Translations under genes and position numbers: made by a program
Shown: positions 9,726 through 58,936 of the stretch, piece after piece
Position numbering within the stretch: the stretch's first letter is position 1
Layout: each line of letters opens with the position of its first letter
Notes under the pieces: generated by a model
Told to the model about the DNA's origin: nothing
The model's database searches: none
Seen by the model: only the letters and a program-made list of their open reading frames with translations
IMG/VR virus record: IMGVR_UViG_3300022744_000022
Span: 1-64,000 of that record
Strand: one strand, 5' to 3'
Length of the DNA stretch: 64,000 nucleotides

Positions 9726-9727
9726 AT

Positions 9728-31200: not shown

Positions 31201-31742
31201 CGATGGCCAAGATGGCGTACGCGGATGGTTCGCAGAAGTTGCGTGAGTCCGTGCTCTCGACGTACCAACACCTAAGCTCTCTCGATGTCGGCGGCAACAT
31301 CGTGTACATCCTGACCAACGCTCTGGAGTACCCGACCACCGATGGTGGCGGTCTCGCTACGGAGCACAAGGGCGTCTTCCAGGACGATGAGTCCATGGCT
31401 CTTGCCGCCGACCTCACCTTGGTTGGCTTTGTCACCAACCAGGCGTTCATCATCGGATCCGGCGGTGCGATCATTGCAGGGTACTCGGACGACGCTACCT
31501 TGGCGGGTGAGGGATTCCTTCCCAACGAGTATGCGCAGGAGCGCCTCCGCAGAACAGCCAACCACATCGTGGTGTCGTTGCTAGGTACCGGACTGCCTCC
31601 AGACAACCCGGAGAACCACTCGTACGCGGTCAGTTATATCGTGCGTGGGGACTCGGGCTCTCACGACATTACAGTGGCGCAGATGGAAGTGATTGACCTC
31701 GGGGTCTTCACGGTCACGTACCGCGAGTTCACGGAGGGCTGA
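28263..31742 (+). CDS. baseplate J-like (gp6/gp47-like) wedge protein
   Basis: GAAGNVPAGSIKTL...INEAATVFGDDVESNADLASRA is the Baseplate_J signature. GKVDVWI. Confidence 0.85.
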   Translation: MAQAPQIALRDGSGFTTNLVFTTNEEAIYITGTVDVNTVSVQLSVNGGAFVSDPNLVSFVLQTFTIPNLSVYPTGLPLEFGVNTILIRTIDIVGGVSATSSVLVTRVSDVDMTGTQIPTGIRVRRYRNFIEILAAKPQPITNVVQTDSGESVLVTIDTSTFMGFNVYASVEPAGVSGYYRVNEKPITSPAEFEEDDITSYDDLAVWDVSSAKTLRVRVTEEDEFGNEVAVRLDSFHSNSTLGGKIRLNSTLQNYEFNEFLVFPHTRSGGSGIINSDQFINVPDSDPLYYVVTGVYYDPITNVEIETPYSQEVLGSPLILDTTIRDLPGRTQTQIVTSYMQAVGRVNTEISLLPGSVTRDVDIDPFASEAERIWFLLDFVHRSQSFLTLLAIDNVSGNGTSDPVAGSAYKQALKAALGYTNDSSVQALIDQQFDKLAANVNKTRLAGRQSVGNLTLYTTTKPTKDLQVPAGSFAASTADSSTGTTAQRFRIGGSYVLPATNAEAYYNFNEKRYELRVALVAELAGAAGNVPAGSIKTLIGISGFQAINEAATVFGDDVESNADLASRAMLGFASVDTGTETGYASTAAAKIGVIKTEIVKSGDALMMRDYDDVRKKHIGGKVDVWIQGVQERQAQDKFAFSFEIARDTRCQIIDPITNLIFRVLDSRVTPTTPIIEILNNPSQGLGVRNATLGLDYDLTGVSILDYQTFQLNNSIAQPPTAIDDTILADYRFRVVNQFFMTLQPVRRVVSVVGEVSGALDPSTHYELFKTDDPLLDGESTIARDYVAITPSGGTPSGDTITVNNELHVMIGFEQEPLDSIGINTATIRVFNEQRTIEFEPPGSLAPDYDIIQGTPTTPVRIVLTTASQIASGQEVSVDYVHDENFTVTYVINELLQQLQAILDNKRHVTADVLAKQAIQNDIDIETTVQLKKGSTKAKTDPVIRNNVSLDLNKKVIGEGVAQSNVDAAINDSTGVQFNVLPMAKMAYADGSQKLRESVLSTYQHLSSLDVGGNIVYILTNALEYPTTDGGGLATEHKGVFQDDESMALAADLTLVGFVTNQAFIIGSGGAIIAGYSDDATLAGEGFLPNEYAQERLRRTANHIVVSLLGTGLPPDNPENHSYAVSYIVRGDSGSHDITVAQMEVIDLGVFTVTYREFTEG

Positions 31743-42260: not shown

Positions 42261-44831
42261 ATGACTAAGAACTTCGGTCCCGCAGTTAGTGGTTACGATG
42301 TCCCGGAAGGTCGGGCTTGGGAGACGGTTGTCTTCGAGTCTGGGAAGCCGGTTCTCGACCGCGAGCTGAATCTCAGCCAGGACGTGGACGGGGGTTCGGC
42401 ACAGGCCGTCTTGCGGCGTTCCACGCCTTCGGGCTGGATCTCCGACGATTTCGTGGGGACCTCTAGTGCGGTGGGGGCTATCTTCTCGCCTTCGGCTGTA
42501 GCGGACACGCTTGAGATCCCCAATGCGTTGGTGGCTCACGTCAACGGTTGGCTACTCAAGATCCAACACACGAACATCACGGGCTCCAATCAAGTCACGT
42601 TGGGTCCAGGTCCTGTGGGGCTCGGGGCACAGCGTACCGACATGGTTGTGCTTGAGGTCTGGCGTCGCCTGATCTCTGCTGCCCCGAGCACCGTGGGCAA
42701 GTCGGCTACGGCGCGTATCTGGCAGCAAGGTAACGTAGCGACCGACCCCGCCAATGACTTGGTGCTGAACTACCCGGATGACCTTCTGGACACGAACGTT
42801 GGCGCAGAGACGACCAAGCGAGTTCAGATCCAATACCGGCTTCGGTGCATTCAGAACGTCAACGTCATCGCGTTTCCCTATGGGCTCAACGACCCGGCAG
42901 TTGTGGCGAACTCCGTGCCTCCGAGTGCAGCTTTTCCGGACGGCACTGCCACGGTTTTCCCCTACGTGAACCAGTCGGCCTCGGGGGATCCGGGCCTCTG
43001 GATCGCCGGTGACGGTAACCCGGCCAACACGCTCGGAACCGTCGATGGGTACATGTACTGCATCCCGCTCTTGGCTGTGTTTCGTCGCAACCAAACGGGC
43101 TTTGACCGTCGGCTCAATCAGAACGGTGGCGTAGCTTCGCCCGGCCCCTCGGACCGCCCGGATGGCCTCTTTCAAGACATCATCGTGGCTGAGGACATCT
43201 TGGATCTTCGGTCGGGTGTATCGCCCTCGGGTTGGTCCCTTCCGGAGCTGCTTGAGAAGAACGTCAATTTCCTGCTCGACAACACGTTGCGCACGGAGAT
43301 CACCGATACCTCACCGGACGGCGGCGGCTGCCGTGGCACCACTGTGTTCGTTGCGAACGAAGTTGGTGTGCTCCCAGGTAACGGCGTCACCACGGGTGAC
43401 ACAGGGGCGGGTCCGTTTTTTGGGCAGTTTGACTCGGTTCGTCGGCGCTTTTCGGATCGTTCGATCTTCGAGACCGTGACGGTGGTGGTTCCGGCTCCTG
43501 GTGGTGGTTGGCTGCCTGGTTCGGTGGTCACCATAGATCCCACGGCACTCGCGCCCTACCCTTACCCAGCGTTCAACTGGTCAGCCTATGCACCAGCCGA
43601 TGTTCGCTTTCTCGATGTGCTGCGCGCTCAGTACGTGGGGGCTGCACCCCCTCTCAAGACTCACGATGCCTTGAATGACATCGATTCGATCGAGAACTTG
43701 GGGGCGGGACCTATCCTGCCTCTGGTCATCACCATGGACACCCCGTCGGGCGGCGTCACAACAGAGCCCCTGCATGTGACCCTAGTGATCGGGTACCCGA
43801 CTGGCGTTGGGTTGGCCACGACTCCAGTGGCGGACTACGGAGCCAATAGCTTCGCGTTCACGACTGCTCCGCCGTCCGCGTTGCTGCCCACCTCTTTCAG
43901 TGCCGTGGCGAACCAGGCTTTTGATTACGCACACCGTGAAGTCCAGCTTGAGTACACGACGGTTTCGATTTCGTTTGCGGGTTCTGCGGACACAAGCGGG
44001 CCCACCACAACGCTCTACTTGCCCGAGCGGGCACAGACCGTAACTTCGATCCTGATCAACGCGGTCCCGGTATTCGGTTCCACATTGGATGTGACAGGTC
44101 GGATCATCACGTTGGCGGCCCCCACGGCACCTGGCGATGACTTTGCGGTCACCTACACGGCTGTGCGTCCGATGCCCCAGGCCAACGTGCAGATGAATGT
44201 GTACTACCGGACCGCTGCCCCGCAGACAGCCCGCAACGCCCTTCTGACCGGCAGTCTGACGGTCGTGCCCAAGGTCACGAGCCCCTTGATGTACGCGCTC
44301 ACGACGGGCTCTGGGTCGCAAGACGAGGGGTATCCGCTGCCCTACGCTTACGTGCAATCCGGCGGCATTTTCCCGAGCAACCTGGCGACGTACTCGGGAG
44401 AATCGGAGCTGTCGGGTCGTGCGGAGATCTCGGTCGCGGATTTCAACGCGGATACCGGCTTGTTGAAGCTCCCGGTCTATGTGCCGATGGTTGCCAACCC
44501 TGAGTCCTTGGTGTTCACCCGGGGTTTGGGTGACGTGGACGTTGAGGGTCGAACGTACTTCAAGACGGTTCCACCCGGGTACGTGCCCAACGCCTACTCG
44601 CAGGACTTGAGCAATTCGGATCGTCACAAGGACATCTACCCGCTTTTAGCGGAGTTGGCGGCGGACGGTCCCCTGGGTTTCAAGGGGCAGCTCGTTCTCA
44701 TCCTACTCATTCGATATGCCGCCTTTGATGAAACCAACGGCGTCTATTTCGATGCTGACTTGAACGCCAACACGACGACTGCAAGCGTCTTCCGCATCAA
44801 GGGCAACTTGCTCAGCAAGAGAGCTTCGTAA
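42261..44831 (+). CDS. tail fibre anchor protein A (856 aa)
   Basis: VVFESGKPVLDRELNLSQD N-terminus typical of baseplate-proximal fibre proteins. Paralogous to 54590..58936. Confidence 0.7.
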   Translation: MTKNFGPAVSGYDVPEGRAWETVVFESGKPVLDRELNLSQDVDGGSAQAVLRRSTPSGWISDDFVGTSSAVGAIFSPSAVADTLEIPNALVAHVNGWLLKIQHTNITGSNQVTLGPGPVGLGAQRTDMVVLEVWRRLISAAPSTVGKSATARIWQQGNVATDPANDLVLNYPDDLLDTNVGAETTKRVQIQYRLRCIQNVNVIAFPYGLNDPAVVANSVPPSAAFPDGTATVFPYVNQSASGDPGLWIAGDGNPANTLGTVDGYMYCIPLLAVFRRNQTGFDRRLNQNGGVASPGPSDRPDGLFQDIIVAEDILDLRSGVSPSGWSLPELLEKNVNFLLDNTLRTEITDTSPDGGGCRGTTVFVANEVGVLPGNGVTTGDTGAGPFFGQFDSVRRRFSDRSIFETVTVVVPAPGGGWLPGSVVTIDPTALAPYPYPAFNWSAYAPADVRFLDVLRAQYVGAAPPLKTHDALNDIDSIENLGAGPILPLVITMDTPSGGVTTEPLHVTLVIGYPTGVGLATTPVADYGANSFAFTTAPPSALLPTSFSAVANQAFDYAHREVQLEYTTVSISFAGSADTSGPTTTLYLPERAQTVTSILINAVPVFGSTLDVTGRIITLAAPTAPGDDFAVTYTAVRPMPQANVQMNVYYRTAAPQTARNALLTGSLTVVPKVTSPLMYALTTGSGSQDEGYPLPYAYVQSGGIFPSNLATYSGESELSGRAEISVADFNADTGLLKLPVYVPMVANPESLVFTRGLGDVDVEGRTYFKTVPPGYVPNAYSQDLSNSDRHKDIYPLLAELAADGPLGFKGQLVLILLIRYAAFDETNGVYFDADLNANTTTASVFRIKGNLLSKRAS

Positions 44832-47800
44832 TGCCATCTACAAGAGACCCCGTAGCAGTTGTTCAGCCCGGTCCTGGTCGTCTACCGGCCAATACGGTTC
44901 CGGCCAACGCTTTGATCTTCCCGCCCGGCGGGGGGTCGAGTGCTGCCTTGACGGCGCACATCACGGACCCCGTGGGTGCTCATGCTGCTACCGCGATCTC
45001 GACCACGGCGGGTCCTGCGTGGCTCGATGGTAACCCGAACGCTGCGATCACGGCACAAGCTCGTATCGATGAGATCATCGCTGATCTCATCGCAAATCAG
45101 GGCTCAAACCGTACGGGCCAACCGGGCTTTGCCGGTAACACCTGGAACGTTGCAGCCGGGGCTCTCTCGACAGCGCTCACGGAACTCTTTGAGAGTGCCA
45201 ATGCTCGTCCTGCTTGGGTTCTTGATGCGAACCCGGCAGCAAAGGGTGACTTCGTTGGGCCCAACGCTTTGATCAGTGCGGTGGCTGCTGGCTTCTATCT
45301 GACGGAGCGCCCCACGTTGTTCTTGCGCCCAGGTACCTACAACTGGACCGATCCATCCGCCACTGCGCTTGATGCTGTTACGATCATTGGCGGGAACAAC
45401 GTCACCATTCAGAATCTCGCAGGCAACATGCGCTGTGGTATTCTGACCCGAATCTCTAATGTTCAGATCCAGTTGTCGGGTAACCTCGTGTTCGGCGGGG
45501 CGGGCTTCTGTGAACTACGGAACGTCAATCTACTCGTAGGGGGTGAGGTTCAGGTCAACCCCTCTAGTGTCTTGAACTCTTTTGAGCACGTGTACGGGAA
45601 CTCGCCGCAGTTCTTCAAAGTCGAAGCTCCGCGAACCATGATTCGCGACTACTCGAACTGTCAGGTTCGGCTCCTTCCAACGGCTACGGATTGCGTGGTG
45701 GGCACGGGTTCTGTAGTGGCCGCAGGCCTCAAGTACAACAACCTCCCGGCTCTTTCAGTTGAAAGCGCGCGTAACAGCATCCAAAGCGTGGCGCTATCCG
45801 GCAACCTTATTGCGGGTATGCTCGCAAACTGGGTTGAGATTTCTGGAGACAGCAACACTGTCTCGCAGCTCTCCTTGTTGAATGTGCCTGCGGCGGCGGG
45901 TGGTAATAACGCGATTTGGGTGTCGGGCCACAATAACACCCTAGACGCGGTATCGCTCTCAACGATGAGCGGCTACATCTTCCCGTTGTTCCAGGTGGGT
46001 GGTGGTGTCTCAACGGCAAGCGGTAACGTTGTAACGAACCTGAAACTAGACGCGGTTTCAGGGGCACTCGACGATATCATTCGCTTGGACGGTACTAGTA
46101 ATTCGATTGACGGAATTGAGATCGCCACTGTCACAACCCCAGCGGCGAACCAGCATGCGCTGTTGGTTGTGGGTACCTCGAATAAGGCGACCCAGGTTCG
46201 CTGCACCGCCTTCACAAGCTTCAATGGCGCTCTGGTCAAGATGTCCGGAGTCAACGGTGTGGTGGAAGGCGTCACTGCCTCGTCGATGACGACCCCCGCT
46301 GCGAACTTCTCGGCGGTGGATATCTCTGGGGAAGGCTGCACCGTACGTGACGTGCGGGTGCAGGGGCTCACGTCTCTGCCGTCAACCTCAACGCTATTCA
46401 ACGTGGGCAGTCTTTGTGAAGACTGCCGCCTTGAGAACGTACTGATCTCGTCTTCGATCACCCCCTCTGGCAAGTACCTGGTGCTGGCCGGGGAAGCGAA
46501 CGTCGTAAAAGACTTCAAGGTGTCTTCGCTCGACATCATGCAGGTTGGTTTTGAGTTGATCGCTATGTACGGCGTCAACTGCCAGCTCAGCGGCGTGCAG
46601 ATCGATTCATTCTCGAACAACGCCGGGGCCACCGCTGCGTTCATGACCCTCAACGGTCAGAACATGATGGTCGAAGGTGTGTTCTTCTCAGGCCTGGGGA
46701 CTGCTGCAAGTCTCACTCTGCCTTTGGTGCGTTTGACCGCAAACTCCTCGGGGACTTTGCGTAACGTGCGAGCGGATGGTGGCACGTCTGTGCTGAGGAC
46801 TGCGGAGTTCTTGACCATCGCTCCTGCGGTAACGGTTGGACAATGGTCAATCGAAGACTGCTACGCAGACATGACCGACAATTCTTCCAACGCCATCACG
46901 ATGGTGGGGGCGTCGGCATTTTTCATGGCCATCAAGGACTCTACTTTTAGAGCCCGTGGTGATGGGGCGGTAGGGTCTAGCGCCACGGTCTTCATGCAAG
47001 ACATGGGGTTCGTGGAGTTCCGAAACGTCTATATTGAAGCTACTGAGGGGCATGCCACAGCTTTCCCCAACTGTGCAGTCACCCTGGATAAGGTCGCGAT
47101 CAGTGGCGGTAACGGTGCCCCCAATGCAGGTCGGCAGTTGTTCCACGGGTCTGGTTACGCTGTGACTAACATGGCCGGTACGACAACCAGCCTACCGTTA
47201 GTGTTGCGGGACGTGGTTTTTTCTGTGGGTACGTCAAATGTTAACACTCTGAGTTTGGGTGATCCCACCCTCTTTTTTGGCGGGCAGGGTTCAGCAGCGC
47301 TGTCCAACCACGGGCCTATTGAGGCGACCGGGTTGCAGGTCATGTCAGGGGGTCTCTCGAACTGGAATCGTAGCTCTATCGTTGCTGTTGATCTGGCTTC
47401 TGTTGCTGCGGGTACGGCACCGAGCGCGTTCCAGAACGTGACGATCAATCTGGGCAATCTCAGTTGGGTGGCCTCTGGCACCCACACAGGGGCGTCCACG
47501 GGCAACATCACTGCCTACGCTTTTCCGAACCAGACGATTACTGGGTTGACGGGGATGACCGCTTCCATGGTGGGGCGCTATTTGACCGTCAGCGGGGCGG
47601 CTACGGCGGGTAACAACGGTCAGTTCCTGATCAATAGCTTCACCAATGCTACGACTGTTGTGGTGACGAACAACTCAGGTTCGGGCTCGGACGCCAATGA
47701 CGGCGCTCTTGCGTGGTCTGTAGCTGGATCTCCTTTCCCAGACTCCGCCCCAGCCTTCTTGGGTTCGGCTGCCGCAGTCTTGGATGTTGAAGGTCCTAAC

Positions 47801-49330
47801 GACGCGGGAGATCCAAACCCTGCTTACACAGCTTTCCGTGGCGTCTCCATTCTCAACGTGATTAATGGTGCGATTGCCGATGAACGCAACATTGTGCGGT
47901 TGAAGGGCTGTGCAATTGACGGTCTTCTCGTTGAAGGCCCGTCTGTGGCCACGGGTGCTGGAACGTTTACAATGCCTGTGGTCAATGCTGTGGCGAGTAG
48001 CGTTCAGCACCTCGATATGTACCCTACTACGCAGTCCCTGCGGTTAGGGCCCTCCACAGCCCACGTGCAAGGCGGATTAACGTACTTCCGAGACGGCCTT
48101 TTTCGTAACCCGCGTTTCGGTAACGTGCCTTGGGCGTATTTGCGGGGCTACTTCGCAGTCTTTGACAACTTCAACATTCTGATCGAGTCCTCAGTGGATG
48201 TTGGGGGTGCGGTTGTTGACCTCTTCGGGTACAGCAAGTTCAATAACGGTACGTTGTCTAACGCTTCTTCTCTGATTCCCTACGGTGTCAGTCTTGGTGG
48301 CTTTGGTGGCAATGAGTGCCTCAATAATCGCTTGACCTCAACTGTCACTGTGTCCACTTATTGGCCGGTGTTGGTTGCTGGCGCAGGGAGCACAGGCCGC
48401 AACCGGGTCAGCGGCAACTTCCTGGACAACACCGGATCGCCTACCGGGCAGTACACAGACACGGGTTGGTCGGGAATCGTTGTCTTGGACTCAGATGACA
48501 ATGTGATTACGGACAACCGTATTCACATGTTGGACAACGCCGATCCGTTGGCCGGACACATCGCAGTCATTGGCGGCAACCTAAACGTCGTCAACAGTAA
48601 TGTGATCCACAACGAGCGTTTCCTTTCCGATTCAGATGGCTCGATAACCCCTCCGTTTTTCTCCCCCAACGTGATCTTTAGTATCACGGGACAATTCCCG
48701 AACAACGGTTTGGTGGGTAAGACTATCACAATCACGGGGGCGGCCACTGCGGCAAACAACGGTACATTCCCGATCACATCACGAGCCACCTCGCAGGTCG
48801 TTTACACGAACGCAGCGGCTGTCGTGCCCGACGCTAATAACGGGAGCATTACGTGGGCGCTTAATGACGGGTTCGCTCGCATTAAGTTTACAGCAGGTGG
48901 CGTGGATGCACGATACTGTGCCGCTACAGGCAACACCTTACGTGCCTCTAACCGAGGTCAGGCGGGAGCGGAAATCGTTATAGACGAGGACGACTGCACG
49001 GCCACAGGGAACGTACTGCTCAATGGTTCTACCGCTAGTGGTGCGGTGCTTTGGACTGACTTCAACGGTACAAGTGCCGATATCCTTGCCCCCTCGATCA
49101 CTGGCTTCCTGTGTGAGCTAAGTGGTGCGTCGGGCTTCACCTCAGAAGATGTCGGGGCTACTGTTTATATCGAGAACTCTATCGGAAATAACAACGGCAC
49201 TCACCTCATCATGGCAGTGCTCGATTCTACGACCGTGCAGCTCTACAACGGTAACGCAGGGGTCTTCTCAGCAGACACCAACATGAGTTGGGTGCGTACT
49301 AAGGGTTCCGGTACCAACGTTACGAGGTAA
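44831..49330 (+). CDS. tailspike/tail fibre with parallel beta-helix (pectate-lyase-like) repeats (1499 aa)
   Basis: PTLFLRPGTY entry motif followed by N/G/V/I-rich beta-helix repeats (ISGDSNTVSQL, VSGHNNTLDAV, ...SDDNVITDNRI). Confidence 0.75.
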   Translation: MPSTRDPVAVVQPGPGRLPANTVPANALIFPPGGGSSAALTAHITDPVGAHAATAISTTAGPAWLDGNPNAAITAQARIDEIIADLIANQGSNRTGQPGFAGNTWNVAAGALSTALTELFESANARPAWVLDANPAAKGDFVGPNALISAVAAGFYLTERPTLFLRPGTYNWTDPSATALDAVTIIGGNNVTIQNLAGNMRCGILTRISNVQIQLSGNLVFGGAGFCELRNVNLLVGGEVQVNPSSVLNSFEHVYGNSPQFFKVEAPRTMIRDYSNCQVRLLPTATDCVVGTGSVVAAGLKYNNLPALSVESARNSIQSVALSGNLIAGMLANWVEISGDSNTVSQLSLLNVPAAAGGNNAIWVSGHNNTLDAVSLSTMSGYIFPLFQVGGGVSTASGNVVTNLKLDAVSGALDDIIRLDGTSNSIDGIEIATVTTPAANQHALLVVGTSNKATQVRCTAFTSFNGALVKMSGVNGVVEGVTASSMTTPAANFSAVDISGEGCTVRDVRVQGLTSLPSTSTLFNVGSLCEDCRLENVLISSSITPSGKYLVLAGEANVVKDFKVSSLDIMQVGFELIAMYGVNCQLSGVQIDSFSNNAGATAAFMTLNGQNMMVEGVFFSGLGTAASLTLPLVRLTANSSGTLRNVRADGGTSVLRTAEFLTIAPAVTVGQWSIEDCYADMTDNSSNAITMVGASAFFMAIKDSTFRARGDGAVGSSATVFMQDMGFVEFRNVYIEATEGHATAFPNCAVTLDKVAISGGNGAPNAGRQLFHGSGYAVTNMAGTTTSLPLVLRDVVFSVGTSNVNTLSLGDPTLFFGGQGSAALSNHGPIEATGLQVMSGGLSNWNRSSIVAVDLASVAAGTAPSAFQNVTINLGNLSWVASGTHTGASTGNITAYAFPNQTITGLTGMTASMVGRYLTVSGAATAGNNGQFLINSFTNATTVVVTNNSGSGSDANDGALAWSVAGSPFPDSAPAFLGSAAAVLDVEGPNDAGDPNPAYTAFRGVSILNVINGAIADERNIVRLKGCAIDGLLVEGPSVATGAGTFTMPVVNAVASSVQHLDMYPTTQSLRLGPSTAHVQGGLTYFRDGLFRNPRFGNVPWAYLRGYFAVFDNFNILIESSVDVGGAVVDLFGYSKFNNGTLSNASSLIPYGVSLGGFGGNECLNNRLTSTVTVSTYWPVLVAGAGSTGRNRVSGNFLDNTGSPTGQYTDTGWSGIVVLDSDDNVITDNRIHMLDNADPLAGHIAVIGGNLNVVNSNVIHNERFLSDSDGSITPPFFSPNVIFSITGQFPNNGLVGKTITITGAATAANNGTFPITSRATSQVVYTNAAAVVPDANNGSITWALNDGFARIKFTAGGVDARYCAATGNTLRASNRGQAGAEIVIDEDDCTATGNVLLNGSTASGAVLWTDFNGTSADILAPSITGFLCELSGASGFTSEDVGATVYIENSIGNNNGTHLIMAVLDSTTVQLYNGNAGVFSADTNMSWVRTKGSGTNVTR

Positions 49331-50377: not shown

Positions 50378-50434
50378 GCAAGTTTTTATAGACTCTCTGC
50401 GGGTACTGCAACATTGCTTGGGAGGGTCTGTGAA

Positions 50435-50905
50435 TTGAACACGCACGGTCGGCATCTTCTCGTTGAGTACCTGGGTTGCGACCCCGAGGCGCTCAATAAC
50501 GTGGACCAGATTCAAGCGTTGATGGAAATGGCAGCGATAGCGGCCAAGACCAACATCGTTTTCTCGAAGTTCAAACCCTTCGTCCCGCAAGGCGTCTCAG
50601 GGGTTGTGGTGGTCGAGGAATCGCATCTGTCCATCCATACCTGGCCTGAGTGTGGCTACGCCGCTGTGGACTTCTACACGTGTGGTGAAGGGGATCCGAA
50701 CGAAGCCCATGAGGTGCTTCGGGGTGGCCTTCAAGCTGCAAGCTTCGAGATGCTCTACGTTGAACGCGGTCGTGGTATCGAGGGTCATGGCCCCTGCATG
50801 AATCTCCAGAGCCACACCCGGGATACGTTGCCCCCGCCTACCGTGTCGGTTGAGATGACTGTCGAGTACCCGCTCGGACCGCAGAACGCTCGGGCTGACG
50901 CCTAA
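50435..50905 (+). CDS. speD: pyruvoyl-dependent S-adenosylmethionine decarboxylase proenzyme family (class 1b)
   Basis: GRHLLVEYLGC...GVSGVVVVEESHLSIHTWPECGYAAVDFYTCG, with the E|S autocleavage site. TTG start 9 nt after GGAGG. Confidence 0.92.
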   Translation: MNTHGRHLLVEYLGCDPEALNNVDQIQALMEMAAIAAKTNIVFSKFKPFVPQGVSGVVVVEESHLSIHTWPECGYAAVDFYTCGEGDPNEAHEVLRGGLQAASFEMLYVERGRGIEGHGPCMNLQSHTRDTLPPPTVSVEMTVEYPLGPQNARADA

Positions 50906-50908: not shown

Positions 50909-53260
50909 TCACGGGTTCACCGCAATCGCGTGGATTGAGGTGCCCACCCAGTACAGGCACTCGTTCACAACCTGCATGGAGTTGAACGAGTAGGAACCCG
51001 AGCCAGTGAAGGTGTAGAGCGGAGTCACAGTGCCGCCGTTGACTGAGACCTTACGGACCTGCTTAGCGTTAGCATCCGCGAAGTAAACCGAGGTACCGTC
51101 GGTCGCGGTGGTGCTTGAGAACCCGTTGCCTGTCCCCACGAGCTTCTGCGCAGAACCGCCTGCCAAGGGCTTCTTCCACACGCCGCTGTTGGCAGGCTCG
51201 ATCCCAACGTAGAGGATGTAGTAGAGGTTGGTGCCATCCGTGGAGAGCGCTGTCATGGTGGTGGCAGCCGTGGGGAAGCTTGCCGAGACATAGCTCTCAA
51301 ACACCGTGGGGGTTCCGCCGTGGATCGGAACCCTAACGATGGGCTTTTGATTGACAGCGCCGTAGTTGATGTAGGTGGCGTAAAGGTACTGGCCATCCGT
51401 GACGAACGGTGCTCCGTACGTGTAAGAACCACCGAGCACGATGTCCGTAGTGGTGGTTGCCCGCCCCCAGTACGAGATGGTCGCGTTATCTTGGCGGCGA
51501 AAGAAGATGTCGGTTGCCGTGACGAGTAAGGCCCGGCCGTTGGCATTTCCGTAGGTGGTCAGGGTCCCGCCGCCGATGGGCTTCGAGAAAACCCCGGGGA
51601 ATGCTGGGATTTGAGCGTCACCGTCCGTGGTCCAGAACACATTGGAGCCCTGCACCGCGACACCACCGATGAACCCGGGCTGATTGGTGGCCAGCGAGAT
51701 GGTTGCACCGCCTGTGCGGGGCTGTTGATTCAGATTTCCGCCTTGGCTCCAGTAGATATTGTTGGCATCCACCGCGTAGTTGTTGGCCAGGATCCCCGAG
51801 TCGTAGACTCCACAAGTGCCTGACCCGCAGGCACCGCCGCAGCAACTGTGGCCGCACTGACCGCAGTTCGCTGAGTCCGAGGTGAGGTCAACCTCACAGC
51901 CGTTGGCCGGGTTGTTGTCGCAGTCATCGTGGTCAAGCTGACAGTCAAACGTGCAGGCACCTGCTTGGCAGTACGAGTCAGCACCCTGCACTGAGGGGCA
52001 GCCTTGAGCCGCTTGCCACTGACCGTTGCTTCCGCAGGTCTGGATCTGTTGCCCCGAGCACTGCTGAGTCCCGGGTTCGCAAACTCCCGTGCAAGCGCCC
52101 GCACTACACACGTACTGACAAGCCGAACCCGAGACCCACTGACCCGAACCATTGCAAGTTCGGGGGGTGTCCCCTTGGCAGCTCGTAGAATTCGGCGTGC
52201 AGCTTCCCGAGCAAACCCCTTCGCCACCGCACACGAAGCTACAAGCCGTCTCCGAGACCCACTGGCCCTGGGCATTGCAGCTCCGAGGCGTGAGCCCCTG
52301 GCAGTCCCGGTCCCCAGGGGTGCAGACACCTGAGCAGGTTCCGGCCCCGCATACGTACTGACAAGCCGAACCCGAGGTCCAGCTACCGCTGGAGTCGCAA
52401 GTCTGAGGAACCAGACCCGAGCACTGCTTGGCACTGGGGCTACACGACCCCGAGCACACCCCCTCTCCGCCGCAAACGTAAGGGCAAGCCGTTTCCGTGA
52501 CCCACTGAGCGGTCGCGTCACAGTGGCGAGGCACCAAGCCCGAGCAATCCCGGTCACCAGGGGTACAGACACCCGAGCACACGCCTTCACCGCCGCAGTA
52601 CAGCGAGCAGGCGGTTTCCTGTACCCACTGACCCGAGCTATCGCAGCTACGGGGGGTCAAGCCTTGGCAGTCCCGGTCGCCCGGTACGCATGCGCCCGTG
52701 CAGTCACCGGCACTGCAAACGAACGAGCAAGCGAGCCCTTGGACCCACTGGCCATTTGAGTTGCAGCTTCTCGGGTTAAGCCCCTGGCAATCCTTGTCTC
52801 CTGGATCGCAGACGCCCACGCATGCACCGGCTTGGCACACGTGGTCGCACACTTCCTGAGCTTCCCACTGCCCTGACACACAGGCGAACCTTTGAAGGCC
52901 CTCACACTTAGTACCGGGGCCTGAACCGGGGCACTCCGGGATCGTGGCATCCGATCCTGAGTCCGTGCCCGAGTCTACGGGGACGGTAGCATCGACCATC
53001 GCGGCGTCTTGACTACCCGCGTCCGTGATGCTGCCTGCGTCCACGCTGGCGGTCATGGCGTCCGCTTGGCTGCCGTCCTGGGGCGCTGCGTCCGAGACCG
53101 GCAGGCTGCCATCCTGAGGGCTCATCCCGTCCACGACGATTGAGTTACCGCCGTCCGTGAAGACACCCGGCATCGAATCCGTGCGGTCCACGATAGGGCT
53201 TCTATCCATCGAACACGCGGCCAAAAGCACGGCGAACACAACAACGAATTGCTTTTCCAT
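50909..53260 (-). CDS. myxobacterial-style lipoprotein: lipobox, D/A/S linker, 8 Cys-rich repeats, beta-propeller
   Basis: VLLAA|C lipobox. DAG/DSG linker. Repeats C.PG...C.G..P..C...GQW.....C...C..G.C. DCDNNPANGCEVDLTSDSANCGQCG. C-terminal AVDANNIYW / ATDGTSVYF propeller blades. Confidence 0.85.
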   Translation of the reverse strand: MEKQFVVVFAVLLAACSMDRSPIVDRTDSMPGVFTDGGNSIVVDGMSPQDGSLPVSDAAPQDGSQADAMTASVDAGSITDAGSQDAAMVDATVPVDSGTDSGSDATIPECPGSGPGTKCEGLQRFACVSGQWEAQEVCDHVCQAGACVGVCDPGDKDCQGLNPRSCNSNGQWVQGLACSFVCSAGDCTGACVPGDRDCQGLTPRSCDSSGQWVQETACSLYCGGEGVCSGVCTPGDRDCSGLVPRHCDATAQWVTETACPYVCGGEGVCSGSCSPSAKQCSGLVPQTCDSSGSWTSGSACQYVCGAGTCSGVCTPGDRDCQGLTPRSCNAQGQWVSETACSFVCGGEGVCSGSCTPNSTSCQGDTPRTCNGSGQWVSGSACQYVCSAGACTGVCEPGTQQCSGQQIQTCGSNGQWQAAQGCPSVQGADSYCQAGACTFDCQLDHDDCDNNPANGCEVDLTSDSANCGQCGHSCCGGACGSGTCGVYDSGILANNYAVDANNIYWSQGGNLNQQPRTGGATISLATNQPGFIGGVAVQGSNVFWTTDGDAQIPAFPGVFSKPIGGGTLTTYGNANGRALLVTATDIFFRRQDNATISYWGRATTTTDIVLGGSYTYGAPFVTDGQYLYATYINYGAVNQKPIVRVPIHGGTPTVFESYVSASFPTAATTMTALSTDGTNLYYILYVGIEPANSGVWKKPLAGGSAQKLVGTGNGFSSTTATDGTSVYFADANAKQVRKVSVNGGTVTPLYTFTGSGSYSFNSMQVVNECLYWVGTSIHAIAVNP
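51940..52933 (-). repeat. 8 tandem intragenic Cys-rich repeats (about 120-123 bp, 40-46 aa, 6 Cys each)
   Basis: Counted in the translation, e.g. CTPGDRDCQGLTPRSCNAQGQWVSETACSFVCGGEGVCSGS. Coordinates approximate. Confidence 0.85.
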
Positions 53261-53384
53261 GCAGGTACTACAAGTGGACGGCAGAAAACTCTAGTCGTCA
53301 AGCCGGTGTAACAGTGCTTTTTGGCGGTGGTGTAGGTGCGGGGTGGGGCCCGCTAAAGGCTTTGTACACTTCCCTTAGCAAGGG

Positions 53385-53654
53385 ATGCCGAAAGCCGAAA
53401 CTACCGGGGGACTCTTGAAGGGTTTTCGCTTGTCAGCGGGACTCACTCAAAAGGAGCTTGCCCTCAAGCTGGGGGTCAAGGCCGCCCACCTGTCCGAAGT
53501 CGAGAGTGGCCTGCGTAGGGTCAGTGTAGGGAGGGCGGTGCGCTGGGCTCAACTACTTGAGAGACCTGAACTGGAGTTCGTTCGCCTAGCTCTCCAGGAA
53601 GAACTGGACGCTGTTGGGGTCAGGATGACGGTGGAGGTCAAGGATGGGCGCTGA
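53385..53654 (+). CDS. XRE-family helix-turn-helix regulator
   Basis: LKGFRLSAGLTQKELALKLGVKAAHLSEVESGLRR. Confidence 0.9.
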   Translation: MPKAETTGGLLKGFRLSAGLTQKELALKLGVKAAHLSEVESGLRRVSVGRAVRWAQLLERPELEFVRLALQEELDAVGVRMTVEVKDGR

Positions 53655-54531
53655 TGGTGCGGGGCTGCCTAAAGGCTTCGTGTACAAGATTCAGAATACA
53701 TTGAACGGTAAAGTCTATATAGGCCAAACGACCCGAGGCATAGACGACCGTTGGCGGGAACATGTACGGAACAGCTACCGGGGTAAGTCTTCCCCACTTT
53801 GTGACGCTATTCGCGAATTCGGCCCGGCAACTTTTACGGTCCAAGAGTTGCCTCACACCAAGTCATTGCGCAGCGGAGAGTACGAGTGGATTAGGTACTA
53901 TAACAGTATGGATCCACGTTTTGGTTACAATGTTGCAGGCAGCGGATCAGAGCACTCCGAAGAGCGCCGACGGAAGATGTCCGTAGCCATGAAAAGAGTC
54001 TGGGCTGACCCTGAAACGCGAAACAAAATTACCAAGGCTATTCGTGGTGCGAACACCTCTGATGCAGTAAAAAAGAGGCGAACTAGGGGGCAACTTGTTC
54101 GGATGTCGCAGCAAGCTGAGAGATCAAAAATCGCTCTGTCTGTGACCGAATCATGGGCTGATCCTTTGACGGCACAACGTCACCGTTTGGCCATCGAAAA
54201 AATTAAGCCAGATCAATCCGATCGGATGCGGCAACGGATGTCAGATCCCGTTACGAAGGCTCAACTCGTGGCCGCCAGTAAACTGGCTTTAGCACACGCA
54301 GATGTGAAGGTTCGGCAGTCGGAACGGATGCGTCGTCGCATGGCAGATCCGAAGGTGAAGTTAGAACACGCCGCAAAGATGAAACTCGCTTGGGTAGACC
54401 CGGAGTCTCGATCCAAAAGGATTGCGGCTATGAAAGACGCACAGTCTGATCCAGCGCTGCGGGCACGTAAATCAGAGGCCATGAAGCGCACTTGGGCCAA
54501 GAAGAACGCTAAGTCGAGAAACTCCCTATAA
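53644..54531 (+). CDS. GIY-YIG homing endonuclease with C-terminal NUMOD3-like helical repeats
   Basis: FVYKIQNTLNGKVYIGQT...RWREH...EYEWI...GYNV. Repeated W/M-ADP helices (RKMSVAMKRVWADPE). Confidence 0.9.
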   Translation: MGADGAGLPKGFVYKIQNTLNGKVYIGQTTRGIDDRWREHVRNSYRGKSSPLCDAIREFGPATFTVQELPHTKSLRSGEYEWIRYYNSMDPRFGYNVAGSGSEHSEERRRKMSVAMKRVWADPETRNKITKAIRGANTSDAVKKRRTRGQLVRMSQQAERSKIALSVTESWADPLTAQRHRLAIEKIKPDQSDRMRQRMSDPVTKAQLVAASKLALAHADVKVRQSERMRRRMADPKVKLEHAAKMKLAWVDPESRSKRIAAMKDAQSDPALRARKSEAMKRTWAKKNAKSRNSL

Positions 54532-54589
54532 GCCCGCCCATTTGAACGGGGCCGTAGCCCCCTCGAAATCGGATCAGAGGGCAATAGCG

Positions 54590-57500
54590 ATGACTTCAAA
54601 CTTCGGGCCGGGCGTGTCGCGTGTTTTGGAAGCTGCGGGCACGCAGTACACAACGGCGATTTGGCAGCAGGGTAAGCCGCCGACGGATTCTGCGCTGAAT
54701 TTGATGCAGCAGTTGGCGACTGGCGCTGTGCAGTCCGCCGTGCTCCGGGGGATGCCGAGCGGGTTCTTGGGTAACGAGTCCAACCCACAGGCGTCTTTTT
54801 TAACTGATAGCCGCTGGTCGAATTTCTTCCAGTTCGGGCCTCAGCGTACCGGCGAGCAACAGGCCATCATGTGGGCCAACGTAGCAGGTTTCCTTATACC
54901 CGTGACGGGCACTCGAACCGGAACCCCGCCTGGAAGCCCCGACAACGTTCGGACCACGAACATCATCGCGCTGGATCCTCCGCCCGCGAACTCAGGTGAC
55001 TTCCGAATCGACTTTGCCTTCCTGGAAGTCTGGCAAGCTCGTGTTCAACCCAACCCCTCGACCACGAACAAGCCCGCAGCGAGTGCCATCTACAAATACG
55101 GCAACGTAGAAGGTGGCGCGAGCTTCTTGGCTGACGATTTGATCGATCCGAGTCTTGGATTCGAGACTGAGCAGCGCGTCCAGCTCCAGTACCGAATCCG
55201 TGTCGTGAAGGGCCTCGTGGGGCTCACCTCGAACCCCGATGGCTTCGACCCAGTGGTGGTCAAGGCGCAGGGTGCTGCCGCTGCTCCGACCGCCTACACG
55301 TTCACGAACATGCGTCAGGCTTTGGGCGACCCGGGCTTGTGGCGTGCCGGTGATGGGACTCAGAATGCCCTTGGGACCGTGGACGGCTACACGTACGCGA
55401 TTCCGATCTCGGCCATCTTCCGCCGCAACTCGGTGGTGTGGGGTGGTAACCCCAGTCAGAACCTCAACGGTGGTTTCAACCGTAACCCCACGGCAGTGGA
55501 TCGCCTTGGGATCAAGACGTTTTCTACGGTTCCTACGCTGGCCGCCGATCTCTCGGCTGCTGCCACGTCGGCAACCCTAGTATCGGCCACCAACTTGCCG
55601 ATGCCCTTGACTCCCGCGACTCCCGTCACGATTCAAATCGGTGACGAGATCATGACCTATAGTTCGATCACGGGCACTACCGTGAACGGCTTGGTCCGGG
55701 GTCAAAATGGCACGCTCGCAGAGGCGCACAAATCGGGCCTCACCATCAAGGTTTTGTCGGGTCGTCCTGATGGCCTGTACTCGGATCAGATTGCGAACTC
55801 CGACATCCTTGACCTGCGGCACCTAGTTAATCCGAACGGGATGGACTTCGACGCGCTGCTCAAGTCGAACCTAGACAAGCTTCTGCGTGGGCAACTTCGC
55901 GCCAACTGGAAGCGTTCCGGCGGCGGCCCCCAGGGCAGCTTCGTCCACTACCAGGATGCCATCCAGTCCGCTGCGGTTTCCTTGGGTGTCACGCAGCTCG
56001 ATGCTCCCGACAACATTCGCATGGTGTTCTCGGATGCCGCTACGATTCAGCCCGTAGAGTTGGTGGCTCAACCCTTCGGCAGCCCCTACGCCGGTCCTGG
56101 TCAAGCCATCAACGCCACTTGGTCCTTGAGTCTTACGGTCAACACAACTCTTCAAACCGTGGGACAACAGTTCACGGCTGGGGACACGATCGTAATCCCT
56201 GTGAACCAGCTCAAGAACGGGCTGCAAGCCGGTGCCACGGATCAGGTTCGTTGGCTCAACGACGGTGTGGTGGGTGCCATCCAGTTGCGCCTGGAAGGCG
56301 AGACGGGCGATCTTCCTTCAAGCATGTACACGGTAACTCCAGCGGTCCCGGGGCCCAATGAGGATCTCACGATTACGTTGGGTGGCACCTTCCCAGCGCA
56401 GCTTTCAACAACAGCCTCTCCGCGTTTGCTGCACATCCGAGCCCACATCGTCTACGGTGCAGGTCGGGGCCTTTCGCGTCGGCCGGACTCGCTGCATTCG
56501 ATCAGTTACCTGAATCCTTCGGCGGATCTGTTGGTTCAGCAGGCTGGTGTCCCCTTGAGCAATAAGGGTTCGAGAGTCTCGTGGGCTCCTTTGTGGAGCA
56601 AGTACCGCAGCAGCGTCTTCAACAACGCTCTGCCGTCTACCGCTGAGATGTACGCGGATCTCGGAAGCAAGACCGTGATCGCCACGCCTTTCCGGCGGGT
56701 CAACTTCACGCAGGGCTTGCTCACGATCGACGGTGACGCAGCTAACCCTCACCCCGACGCGATCGTTGGTGCCCCGACTTCGGGTACAATCGCTGCCGTA
56801 AATTCCCCGACGATCAACGTAGCTTCCACGCTCAACACTGCCGTTGGAAACGCCCTGGTGATCGCCAGCGGTCCGGGAACTGGGCGCTACACCATCACAG
56901 GTCTTGTCGCTAACACCTCCATCACGGTGGATCGCCCGATTCGGGCTAACGCTGTGGCGGTCACCTTCACCATCCATACGGCACAAGGCTGCATGCCCGC
57001 GTTCACCAAGACGGGTGCCGCTAAGTGGGGCACTACAGATCCGTTAGGCATGTTCTGCGGTCAAGGTGCCGGTGGCCCCGCGTACAACAGCATCTACGTA
57101 ACTCTGCCGAGACACTTGGTGCCTGGTTGGGGCGAGCTTCACGTCCCTCTGCTCCACACGGATACGGCAGCTTTCGCCCAAGGCCTCAACTACATTACGA
57201 ACAGTGGGACAGGTTCAAGCTTTTCAGACTCAGACAAGAATTTCGTAAACTACAACCCAAATACGGGTTACACGTATGCAGGGTTCTCAACTCTGAATCT
57301 GAACACCTCCCTTCCCTCCGTTTACAACAACGCCTTCAACTATGTGGGCAACAATTACGCGGGGATGCGCTTCTTCACGGATACCCGGGGACTTGGCCGT
57401 CAAGGTCTGGAGTTGCCTCCTTTCTATGGTGTTGCTCGTTTGTTCGCTGTCTATGAAGTGGCGGACTACCTTGGGGCAGGCGGGTCTGGGTTTGATCCCA

Positions 57501-58936
57501 CAACCCGCATCCCGACTGGCGGTGGGGCAACGAATCTGCTTCGTCAAGCGATGCCTCAAGGATCGGGACCATCCTTCTGGGTTGAGATCGACTCCGACGG
57601 GGACTCCACGTTCATCCTGAACGCCAACGCGATCGACATCACCAAGTCTCCGAACCCGATCGCAAACTTCGGGGCGGGTAACTACGTGATCGAGGCTTCT
57701 GTGTTCGGGTTTGATCGCGGCACTTTCGACCTTGGGTCGGAAGCCCGTCTGGTTTTGACTAACCCTTTTGGTATCGGTGGTAACCCCGGGACTGGGGATA
57801 GTTGGACCAACGTAGGCACGGGGTCTGTGAGCCTAGTGACCCGTTCCAACAACATCAACAAGCTGGTCGCAGGGCCTTCAGCGATCATCCCTGGCCCGGC
57901 CGAACCGTCGGATCAGATCCTCGTCAACTACTCCCGCACTGTCTACCAGGGCGATGCGTGGGGCAGTCAGACCAACTACGCAGACATCCCGTACGCCCCG
58001 GGTCCCCTGACCTCGGGAACCGCGTACCAGATCGATTCCACGGATCTGGATCCCAACGCTTTGACCCGTCCCAACCAGAAGGTTTTGGAGGTGCTCGCCA
58101 GCACGAGCTTCTCCACGGACCTCGGAACGGGCCGTTACTCGGCTGACGCCACTACCACGACCCTGGACTTCAAGGACGTGGGGTACGAGGATCCGACGGT
58201 CTATCCGCCGACCTCGGGTATTGCCGATCGTCCCAAGGTGTTGCCCAACAACTACTCGGCTCAGGATGTGACGAACATCGGAACCGAGTACCTGGGCTGC
58301 ACGGAGCGCTTGCCGTTGGGTGCCTTGTTCCGCGACAAGGACTTCCGAGGGCAGGTCTTCACGTACCTCCCGTCCCCGTTGGTCTACTCGGATCAGGTTG
58401 GTGCAGGTCCCTCTACAAGCCTTGCTCCGAGTCACTCGGGTGATCAGGACGAAGTGTTGCTCACCACCGCATCTTCGGGCGTGGGCTCGCCGGGCGACCT
58501 TCTGGTTCATGTAGATGGTGAGCAGGGCAACTACAACTTGCTCACCAACTTCCGTGTGACTCGTGGCGGCTCTGTGTTCACGGCCTCCGGGGCGAACCCC
58601 GGTGGAACCGTGGCGTTGCAGAACCAGGCGTCGTTGGCTCAAACCAACCACGTCAACGTGCTGCAAGGCCGGGCCATGCTGGTCCGTAACACGGTCACGA
58701 ACGTGGGGGCTACGGAAGTCTCAGCGGGTGATGAGCTGATGCTGCTCATCCTGACGACGGTCCAGCGTCCTGCGGTTGGTACGGTGGACCCCTCAGTGGT
58801 TCTCATCGGCACCAACGGTACCGGCGAAGGCTACTCGGCCGCCGACCTCTACCGTATCGAGGGTCACCCCTTGGTCCGTAACAACGTTCGAGTAAACCTG
58901 GATCCGGCGACCATCCCGCTGGCCAAGAGGGGTTGA
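54590..58936 (+). CDS. tail fibre anchor protein B (about 1448 aa)
   Basis: ATG 54590 (MTSNFGPGVS) with GAGG SD. Strongly paralogous to 42261..44831 in its N-terminal ~450 aa. Confidence 0.8.
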   Translation: MTSNFGPGVSRVLEAAGTQYTTAIWQQGKPPTDSALNLMQQLATGAVQSAVLRGMPSGFLGNESNPQASFLTDSRWSNFFQFGPQRTGEQQAIMWANVAGFLIPVTGTRTGTPPGSPDNVRTTNIIALDPPPANSGDFRIDFAFLEVWQARVQPNPSTTNKPAASAIYKYGNVEGGASFLADDLIDPSLGFETEQRVQLQYRIRVVKGLVGLTSNPDGFDPVVVKAQGAAAAPTAYTFTNMRQALGDPGLWRAGDGTQNALGTVDGYTYAIPISAIFRRNSVVWGGNPSQNLNGGFNRNPTAVDRLGIKTFSTVPTLAADLSAAATSATLVSATNLPMPLTPATPVTIQIGDEIMTYSSITGTTVNGLVRGQNGTLAEAHKSGLTIKVLSGRPDGLYSDQIANSDILDLRHLVNPNGMDFDALLKSNLDKLLRGQLRANWKRSGGGPQGSFVHYQDAIQSAAVSLGVTQLDAPDNIRMVFSDAATIQPVELVAQPFGSPYAGPGQAINATWSLSLTVNTTLQTVGQQFTAGDTIVIPVNQLKNGLQAGATDQVRWLNDGVVGAIQLRLEGETGDLPSSMYTVTPAVPGPNEDLTITLGGTFPAQLSTTASPRLLHIRAHIVYGAGRGLSRRPDSLHSISYLNPSADLLVQQAGVPLSNKGSRVSWAPLWSKYRSSVFNNALPSTAEMYADLGSKTVIATPFRRVNFTQGLLTIDGDAANPHPDAIVGAPTSGTIAAVNSPTINVASTLNTAVGNALVIASGPGTGRYTITGLVANTSITVDRPIRANAVAVTFTIHTAQGCMPAFTKTGAAKWGTTDPLGMFCGQGAGGPAYNSIYVTLPRHLVPGWGELHVPLLHTDTAAFAQGLNYITNSGTGSSFSDSDKNFVNYNPNTGYTYAGFSTLNLNTSLPSVYNNAFNYVGNNYAGMRFFTDTRGLGRQGLELPPFYGVARLFAVYEVADYLGAGGSGFDPTTRIPTGGGATNLLRQAMPQGSGPSFWVEIDSDGDSTFILNANAIDITKSPNPIANFGAGNYVIEASVFGFDRGTFDLGSEARLVLTNPFGIGGNPGTGDSWTNVGTGSVSLVTRSNNINKLVAGPSAIIPGPAEPSDQILVNYSRTVYQGDAWGSQTNYADIPYAPGPLTSGTAYQIDSTDLDPNALTRPNQKVLEVLASTSFSTDLGTGRYSADATTTTLDFKDVGYEDPTVYPPTSGIADRPKVLPNNYSAQDVTNIGTEYLGCTERLPLGALFRDKDFRGQVFTYLPSPLVYSDQVGAGPSTSLAPSHSGDQDEVLLTTASSGVGSPGDLLVHVDGEQGNYNLLTNFRVTRGGSVFTASGANPGGTVALQNQASLAQTNHVNVLQGRAMLVRNTVTNVGATEVSAGDELMLLILTTVQRPAVGTVDPSVVLIGTNGTGEGYSAADLYRIEGHPLVRNNVRVNLDPATIPLAKRG

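Follow-up and report, generated by a model that had tools for sequence, protein, structure and literature searches.

Why would a virus carry, beside its baseplate and fibre genes, a gene for a large lipoprotein on a long stalk? The question is raised by a stretch of 64,000 nucleotides (positions 1 to 64,000 of the IMG/VR virus record IMGVR_UViG_3300022744_000022; this whole stretch is called the window below), in which an open reading frame (ORF) on the minus strand, 50909..53260, opens with an ATG and encodes a protein of 783 amino acids (aa) and ~80 kDa. An initial annotation of the window had described the product as a phage-encoded surface lipoprotein of myxobacterial type and suggested that it remodels the surface of the infected cell. 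The sequence predicts an envelope protein that is exported, anchored by a lipid and rich in disulfides. For its role we tentatively favour, at less than even confidence, receptor masking: lytic conversion by a long-reach analogue of the Llp protein of phage T5 and the Cor proteins of T1/phi80. From the N- to the C-terminus, the protein consists of the following parts:

53213..53260, minus strand: signal peptide II (residues 1-15) and lipobox (L-A-A-C16, with C16 the predicted lipid-anchor residue)
52934..53212, minus strand: acidic, low-complexity, disordered tether (residues 17-109, 93 aa)
51944..52933, minus strand: stalk of eight tandem six-Cys modules (residues 110-439; 40-41 aa each, the last 46 aa)
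51812..51943, minus strand: nine-Cys neck (residues 440-483; DCDNNPANGCEVDL..NCGQCGHSCCGGACGSGTC motif, including NCGQCG)
50912..51811, minus strand: YWTD/TolB-type beta-propeller head (residues 484-783, the C-terminal 300 aa)

No other ORF in the 64 kb has a convincing lipoprotein signal. The N-terminus of the protein reads MEKQFVVVFAVLLAA followed by C, which places Cys16 directly after L-A-A in a canonical lipobox (pattern [LVI][ASTVI][GAS]C), and it has both a positive n-region (M-E-K) and a hydrophobic h-region (QFVVVFAVLLAA). When 29 full-length homologues are aligned, Cys16 is invariant, as are more than 50 further Cys, a pattern beyond chance. The residue that follows the lipobox Cys (+2) is S, G or A, and never K or D, in the 26 homologues in which the motif scan placed the lipobox correctly. 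By the E. coli rule as well as by the Myxococcus rule, such +2 residues predict sorting to the outer membrane. Since neither Lys nor Asp is found at this position, the protein would be lipidated and sorted to the outer membrane of the host. Of its 59 Cys, 58 remain in the mature form and need an oxidising compartment, so the protein is expected to be exported to the periplasm during infection. A component of the virion was also considered and was rejected, since the lipoprotein signal and the 58 Cys argue for export.

The tether has 17 D/E residues compared with 2 K/R, consists to 53% of S/G/A/T/P and contains DAG/DSG runs; homologous tethers are 55-121 aa long with a median net charge of -15. 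The eight stalk modules (residues 110-150, 151-190, 191-231, 232-272, 273-312, 313-353, 354-393 and 394-439) alternate between two subtypes, one with a CSAGxCTG ending and the other with a CGGEGVCSG ending. The neck includes DCDNNPANGCEVDLTSDSANCGQCGHSCCGGACGSGTC, and the head carries seven YW-type blade motifs (AVDANNIYW, SNVFWT, TDIFFR, QYLYAT, TNLYYI, TSVYFA and ECLYWV). In agreement with the initial annotation, the lipobox, the acidic DAG/DSG segment, eight six-Cys repeats, an NCGQCG repeat and a propeller with AVDANNIYW blades can all be read from the translation. The propeller contains a single Cys, Cys768, which is invariant among the 13 closest homologues. As the nine neck Cys and Cys768 make an even number, a disulfide may form that locks the neck to the propeller.

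What kind of head does the stalk carry? An AlphaFold2 model built from the 29-homologue alignment has a mean predicted local distance difference test score (pLDDT) of 77, with values <50 at residues 13-107 (the tether) and ~90 in the propeller, and represents the stalk as a string of small beta-hairpin modules. When a profile of the family was searched against the PDB, it matched the YWTD propellers of LRP6 (E=4e-9), the DUF5050 structure 3s25, described as '7-bladed' (E=4e-8), TolB (E=3e-6) and LDLR (E=5e-5), with a weak match to nidogen. Foldseek matches in the PDB comprised LRP2/megalin, LRP6, LRP4, ApoER2, LDLR, nidogen, TolB and BamB. A propeller fold is thus indicated by the seven YW motifs, by the pLDDT of ~90 and by both the profile and the Foldseek matches. 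Because the fold and profile matches fall on LRP, LDLR and nidogen proteins, we likened the modelled layout to the low-density lipoprotein (LDL)-receptor family, whose 'small Cys-rich modules plus YWTD propeller' units it resembles: in this family and in nidogen, which provide the best matches, small disulfide-knotted modules also precede a YWTD-type propeller. The LDL-receptor family differs in consisting of eukaryotic type I membrane or matrix proteins, whereas the phage protein has a predicted N-terminal bacterial lipid anchor. In addition, the family has six YW motifs compared with seven here, identity is ~10-15%, and the stalk modules miss the Pfam EGF models.

A further likeness is to the DUF5050/PF16472 propellers, through the profile match to 3s25 (E=4e-8), but the window protein itself lies below any Pfam threshold; faint precomputed matches to PF16472 are present on the related proteins P0008, P0012 and P0019. 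We know of no function for DUF5050. In scans of the window protein, no family was matched at E<=1 in Pfam (hmmscan, including PF00058, PF16472 and the EGF models) or in NCBIfam (including the TraA repeat model TIGR04201), no PHROG family at E<=0.01, and no defence family in PADLOC.

To what kind of genome does this gene belong? The window comes from a 208 kb contig, and the same protein is also encoded on a 291 kb contig. The plus strand of the window is occupied by a contractile-tail-type baseplate module, which also holds several giant ORFs, and the lipoprotein ORF is on the minus strand, opposite to the baseplate and fibre genes, as initially annotated. The features of the locus are:

9728-11536, plus strand: baseplate hub with SLT domain
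15052-17205, plus strand: hub/lysozyme (weak match)
28263-31742, plus strand: Baseplate_J wedge
44831..49330, plus strand: variable fibre- or spike-like protein of 1,499 aa, at the end of the baseplate module
50414..50905, plus strand: S-adenosylmethionine decarboxylase (AdoMet_dc; PF02675, E=2.7e-34; phrog_3125)
53385-53654, plus strand: XRE/HTH_3 ORF (Pfam and PHROG matches), overlapping the GIY-YIG gene
53644-54531, plus strand: GIY-YIG homing endonuclease (Pfam and PHROG matches; GC content at third codon positions, GC3, 0.53 compared with 0.63-0.77 for its neighbours)
54542..58936, plus strand: conserved structural protein of ~1,450 aa (a 1,464-aa ORF; weak tail-fibre match, phrog_11439, E=3.7e-4)

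That the gene is phage-borne, as had been claimed, is borne out by the viral contig, by the Baseplate_J and SLT hub genes and by a published relative. Full-length homologues that were traced to contigs share 32-72% identity. They were found on L001/L015 (398 kb), L002 (116 kb), L004 (283,523 bp), L005/L006 (147 kb), L007 (also on a 433 kb contig), L010 (71 kb), L011 (87 kb), L013 (37 kb), L014 (323 kb), L016 (412 kb) and a Logan contig of 9 kb, and L004 corresponds to SR-VP_PHAGE_57_11, a huge phage described by Al-Shayeb et al. 2020 (PMC7162821). Searches of 50,697 deposited phage records by tblastn and megablast gave no match, and a tRNA scan of the window found none. In ten distinct relatives (contigs of 37-433 kb from independent samples and assemblers), the lipoprotein gene adjoins a homologue of the ~1,450-aa gene or lies within ~6 kb of it. 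The two genes are usually divergent; in L010 they share a strand, with the lipoprotein gene directly downstream. The GC3 of the lipoprotein gene is 0.73, compared with 0.63-0.77 for the neighbouring phage genes. Replicated synteny and phage-like GC3 point to an old clade gene and not to a fresh moron. The gene is therefore a conserved, syntenic and long-standing component of a clade of contractile-tail-type phages with huge genomes (about 280-430 kb). As such, it could serve as a simple marker by which clade members can be recognised in metagenomes.

The same evidence bears on the reading that the gene is a passenger or an artefact, i.e. a chance fragment of a host gene or a chimeric assembly with no phage function. 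The abundance of the stalk family in cellular genomes (5,118 representatives at E<=0.001) speaks for this reading. Against it, the same gene occupies the same place in the ten relatives, the frame is intact with an invariant Cys framework and lipobox, and GC3 is like that of the phage neighbours and not like that of the mobile GIY-YIG gene. Recent capture of a host gene, or a one-off moron, is ruled out by the conserved synteny and the phage-like GC3. The initial annotation had named a chimeric segment as one way in which it could fail; a chimera is excluded because the synteny recurs in ten relatives and in independent assemblies. This reading is effectively refuted and retains a negligible probability.

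Which part of the protein changes between relatives? We compared the window protein, part by part, with seven syntenic relatives. The neck is the most conserved part of the protein (50-75% identity), with 22-29% for the tether, 25-52% for the stalk and 20-56% for the propeller head; the neighbouring ~1,450-aa gene gave 51-71%. Averaged over all pairs, identity falls from 61% for the ~1,450-aa neighbour to 42% for the stalk and 29% for the head. The head is the fastest-diverging structured part of the protein. The stalk has been replaced altogether in one relative: the L011 protein (8001-10190; P0039) keeps the lipobox, neck and propeller, with 56% identity in the head, and has a stalk of EGF_CA/EGF_3/cEGF modules. 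Since L011 retains the head but swaps the stalk, the stalk appears to be an exchangeable spacer, and this clean natural domain swap is of experimental use.

The history of the head also differs from that of its neighbour. In the tree of the ~1,450-aa neighbour, L001 and L005 are sisters with 100% support, whereas they lie on opposite sides of the head tree. An approximately unbiased (AU) test disfavours joining the two in the head tree (p=0.024, for a group picked post hoc and with long branches). The block made up of the variable fibre, a 205-aa ORF, AdoMet_dc and the head resembles that of L011 more than that of L004, although the conserved genes are equally distant from both. Co-variation of head and fibre is suggested by two comparisons and is a lead only.

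In three relatives, a sugar cluster adjoins the lipoprotein gene (L001, 13116-22340; L002, 19619-22277; L005, 12959-19756). It contains sugar-nucleotide epimerases/dehydratases, a dTDP-sugar isomerase, glycosyltransferases, a sulfotransferase, GSCFA, radical-SAM/SPASM proteins and methyltransferases, and may be an island for glycan modification, either of the surface or of the virion. In its place, the window holds the fibre-like/AdoMet_dc block.

Whose envelope would the protein be made for? The initial annotation had regarded the architecture as characteristic of Myxococcota and had expected the nearest homologues in Polyangiales. The stalk repeat family is fused to other heads elsewhere (FGE-sulfatase, RCC1, LamG, NHL and others), and the six stalk-family matches that bear organism names are all from Myxococcota or carry the older 'Deltaproteobacteria' label (Polyangiales, Polyangia, Myxococcales and Myxococcaceae). 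Of two scans of species-representative genomes, one gave no match and the second gave two weak stalk/neck matches, in a Polyangiaceae and a Myxococcales metagenome-assembled genome. In Atlas clusters, at weak scores, Myxococcota is the commonest phylum in the top stalk clusters and in all listed head clusters. Stalk repeats share 29-51% identity with modules of Myxococcota cellular proteins, many of which also have a lipobox and an acidic or low-complexity linker. Indeed, a Polyangiaceae protein combines lipobox, low-complexity linker and stalk repeats with a different head, and a lipobox-like start (by a crude pattern) is present in 123 of 206 stalk-family matches. The difference lies in the heads, which in Myxococcota Cys-stalk lipoproteins are FGE-sulfatase, RCC1, LamG, NHL or beta-helix domains. 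Close relatives of the neck plus propeller were found in phage contexts only, down to 35% identity, followed by unrelated proteins at 24-29%; AlphaFold DB clusters contain cellular proteins with Cys modules and a propeller at ~20% identity. The Myxococcota-type architecture therefore holds for the lipobox, linker, Cys stalk and variable head but not for the neck plus propeller, and the expected Polyangiales affinity is seen in the named stalk matches, whereas the closest neck-plus-propeller relatives are phage-borne.

Taken with the rest of the host evidence, a Myxococcota host seems to us somewhat likely. The taxonomic profile of the relative SR-VP_PHAGE_57_11 shows no clear host phylum (75% unknown, 7.7% Spirochaetes, 6.0% Proteobacteria; PMC7162821). 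With the sugar epimerase of L001 as a probe, the named best matches were Armatimonadota and Chloroflexota at ~70% identity. As this enzyme is widely conserved, the probe is uninformative on the host and lends no support to Myxococcota. A 2026 preprint on myxophages and CRISPR makes no mention of these contigs or of lipoproteins. We know of no characterised huge phage of myxobacteria, and the stalk family, named only from Myxococcota, supplies a host hypothesis for this clade that can be put to the test.

How might such a protein serve the phage? We propose that the tether and stalk would hold the propeller some tens of nanometres from its lipid anchor, where the head would bind a component of the host envelope or surface and so mask or sequester the phage's own receptor or co-receptor. 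Infected cells, and the debris left by lysis, would then adsorb no further virions, which would result in superinfection exclusion and protection of the progeny. The stalk would act as a swappable spacer and the head as the specificity module. The position of the gene fits this scheme: it lies at the end of the baseplate/fibre module, between the 1,499-aa fibre-like gene, with which it is convergent, and the ~1,450-aa gene. So do the fold and profile matches, which are ligand-binding YWTD/TolB propellers preceded by Cys-rich modules, and the gene's own promoter-like element, described below. Together, the fibre-adjacent position, the fast-evolving mosaic head and the sugar cluster in L001, L002 and L005 would suit a locus whose editing of the host surface keeps pace with the adsorption apparatus.

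Precedents for receptor masking exist on a smaller scale. Llp of T5 is an early-expressed outer-membrane lipoprotein whose gene is adjacent to that of the receptor-binding protein pb5; it blocks FhuA and prevents both superinfection and loss of progeny on debris (PMC9586334). Llp and the Cor proteins of T1, phi80 and N15 are likewise phage-encoded outer-membrane lipoproteins made in the infected cell, a property that here is predicted from the export and sorting signals. The cor gene of T1/phi80 also lies beside the gene for the receptor-binding protein; in the same manner, the lipobox gene lies between fibre-like and structural genes in the window and beside the ~1,450-aa structural gene in ten relatives. 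The differences are in scale and build. Llp, described as small in PMC9586334, is one of two single-domain types, Llp and Cor, both of which work from the periplasmic side. Their length is about 60-80 aa, whereas the phage protein described here has 783 aa with a tether, an eight-module stalk and a propeller. To our knowledge, receptor-masking envelope lipoproteins of phages are known only as tiny single-domain proteins, and what is new here among phage envelope lipoproteins is the size, the modular stalk, the LDL-receptor-like head and the conservation in a clade of huge phages. If masking is correct, phages would have a second, modular way to edit the host surface, with a specificity module that evolves alongside the fibre genes.

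Several points weigh against masking. The protein has no sequence or family similarity to Llp, Cor or the PHROG, Pfam, NCBIfam and PADLOC families, and at 80 kDa, about ten times larger than Llp or Cor, a stalked protein may act otherwise. No RNA run is among the listed sequencing runs (two DNA runs, from freshwater and aquatic metagenomes). The immediate neighbour, the ~1,450-aa gene, is conserved and not variable, so any tie to a receptor-binding protein has to run through the 1,499-aa gene farther away and through just two comparisons. Finally, fast evolution of the head fits equally well with any arms-race or ligand-switching role. On balance, masking is the reading that we favour, though at less than even odds.

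In a different kind of function, the displayed propeller would alter adhesion between cells, to prey or to a substrate and, in a myxobacterial host with TraAB, would be passed to neighbouring cells by outer membrane exchange. The gap from outer membrane to peptidoglycan seems too narrow for a rod estimated at 20 nm or more that carries a 5-nm head, which favours surface display, and the named cellular stalk relatives are all Myxococcota, many of them lipoproteins. The head-on-stalk layout parallels TraA, in which a variable recognition domain sits on Cys-rich tandem repeats, proposed to form a rigid stalk, and is anchored to the envelope (PMC3325183). TraA differs in having an N-terminal PA14 head, a C-terminal MYXO-CTERM tag and TIGR04201 repeats; the phage protein has the reverse orientation and no PA14 domain, and its stalk repeats match no NCBIfam or Pfam model, TIGR04201 included. 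Heterologous cargo needs nothing more than an outer-membrane type II signal to be exchanged (PMC3325183), and the phage protein has such a signal and no residue for inner-membrane retention. However, since any such signal is sufficient, transfer would be generic to outer-membrane lipoproteins and no evidence of a selected function. The published profile of SR-VP_PHAGE_57_11 without a clear host, and the epimerase probe that points to other phyla, further weaken the case, and it is hard to see what a presumably lytic huge phage would gain from adhesion of its host. We therefore regard an adhesive or social role as unlikely. The initial annotation had put forward viral control of host social behaviour as undescribed, but there is a precedent: the Mx-alpha prophage encodes SitA lipoprotein toxins, which reach other cells through TraAB-mediated outer membrane exchange and shape kin discrimination (PMC5562445). 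SitA proteins resemble the phage protein as outer-membrane lipoproteins from a prophage-like element in myxobacteria that affect kin interactions. They differ in having a C-terminal nuclease or other toxin domain and sitB and sitI partners, where the phage protein has a propeller and no immunity-like partner, and in being borne by a prophage and not by a huge, virulent-looking phage. A SitA-like toxin was rejected, given that there is no toxin domain and no conserved partner gene. In a combined scenario, these phages would infect social Myxococcota and the lipoprotein would be passed by TraAB exchange to uninfected kin, such that masking spreads through the swarm ahead of the phage. This is highly improbable; if true, it would amount to superinfection exclusion at the level of the community, or to kin re-labelling, i.e. 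a viral phenotype that spreads between cells without the viral genome.

The head might also protect against others, as a decoy or shield that captures or blocks other phages, bacteriocins or contact-dependent weapons, any of which could kill the infected cell before the long cycle of a huge phage has ended. A head that evolves fast and is exchanged between relatives would suit this, a long stand-off stalk would keep ligands away from the membrane, and propellers of TolB type are targets of colicin peptides (2ivz, 4jml and 3iax are among the fold matches). Yet PADLOC returned no defence family, nothing points to a ligand, and the position beside the phage's own fibre genes favours a specificity related to the phage itself, which makes a decoy quite unlikely. 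The likeness to TolB (E=3e-6, and in Foldseek) could instead be read as a role in envelope disruption and egress, in which the protein extends into the periplasm and its propeller binds Pal, peptidoglycan or partners in the inner membrane. The envelope would thereby be weakened or bridged at lysis, as by a spanin, or the Tol-Pal system would be disturbed. The protein would be an outer-membrane lipoprotein, as o-spanins are, and the length of tether and stalk, inferred from the AlphaFold2 model, is comparable to the width of the periplasm. It is, however, more than 5 times the size of an o-spanin, its best fold and profile matches are to the LDLR family and not to TolB, and a hypervariable head is unexpected for a conserved partner such as Pal or peptidoglycan. 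Nor is there an adjacent or embedded i-spanin-like partner, or a holin/endolysin cassette nearby. A spanin was rejected on the grounds of size and of the missing partner gene (the neighbours are AdoMet_dc, XRE, GIY-YIG and structural genes), and an egress function as a whole is very unlikely.

The fibre genes were also compared with related loci. By tblastn, the 1,499-aa protein is conserved only over its N-terminal 560-880 aa (32-39% identity), and it has no Pfam or PHROG match; it is a candidate for the distal receptor-binding fibre. Homologues of the ~1,450-aa protein share 67-72% identity in L001, L002, L004, L005, L011, L013, L014 and an L016 fragment, and about 42-55% in L007 and L010. 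As these homologues open with MTDNFGxGVSRVL, the true start of the 1,464-aa ORF is probably the ATG at 54590 (MTSNFGPGVSRVL) and not the mechanically assigned TTG at 54542. The 1,464-aa protein and an 856-aa protein (42261-44831) have in common an N-terminal domain of ~300 aa with ~35% identity, detected through cross-matches to relatives' homologues of each. This suggests paralogous attachment domains of two fibre or wedge proteins.

Is the lipoprotein gene expressed on its own? Downstream, it is convergent with AdoMet_dc and the two stop codons are 3 nt apart, leaving no space for a terminator. The same arrangement is found in L004 and L011, and L013 also has a downstream AdoMet_dc match. 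Relatives have two divergent AdoMet_dc genes, one for each of the structural-gene modules that flank the lipoprotein gene (L004, 3114-3545 and 12532-12990; L011, 990-1463 and 10597-11049). Upstream, we identified one further feature:

53265..53304, minus strand: promoter-like element, CTTGAC..TAGAGT-N17-TGTAGTA, ending 4 nt before the lipoprotein ATG, with no Shine-Dalgarno sequence

The arrangement TTGAA/TAGAGT-N17-TGTA(G/A)TA-N4-ATG, again with no Shine-Dalgarno sequence, is present in 6 of the 9 relatives aligned, and the other 3 have a longer leader with an SD-like GGAG. A conserved element 4 nt from the ATG, with no Shine-Dalgarno sequence, suggests that the gene is transcribed alone, from its own non-canonical promoter and as a leaderless or near-leaderless mRNA. 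A simple scan for canonical sigma-70 promoters and terminators called no promoter, did not recognise the element and yielded nothing useful, and none of the other gene starts in the window carries the composite motif. We also rejected the idea that TGTAGTA serves as a phage-wide promoter. The motif occurs eight more times in the window, each time away from a listed ORF start, and two of these sites fall, on the opposite strand, within the lipoprotein ORF and the 42261-44831 ORF.

The XRE gene had been seen as a regulator divergent from the lipoprotein gene. The ORF is indeed divergent from an HTH_3/XRE gene, but the latter is not a conserved regulator. The XRE and GIY-YIG genes (53385..54531) sit between the lipoprotein gene and the ~1,450-aa gene, and no homologue of either was found in any related locus searched. 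Since XRE overlaps GIY-YIG and both are absent from these relatives, XRE is not a conserved partner, and we rejected it as a conserved regulator of the lipoprotein gene; the pair forms a mobile homing-endonuclease cassette specific to the window. The same gap holds a LAGLIDADG_1 gene in L004 (8893-9753) and a T5orf172/MUG113 gene in L007 (2450-3073), and is empty in L001 and L005. With three endonuclease families in one gap (window, L004 and L007), the intergenic region between the lipoprotein and ~1,450-aa genes (window 53261-54589) looks like a recurrent landing site for homing endonucleases. Elsewhere in L004 (SR-VP_PHAGE_57_11), intein and LAGLIDADG_2 matches lie inside the helicase domain of the SNF2-family helicase (1-1951), and this gene thus appears to contain an intein.

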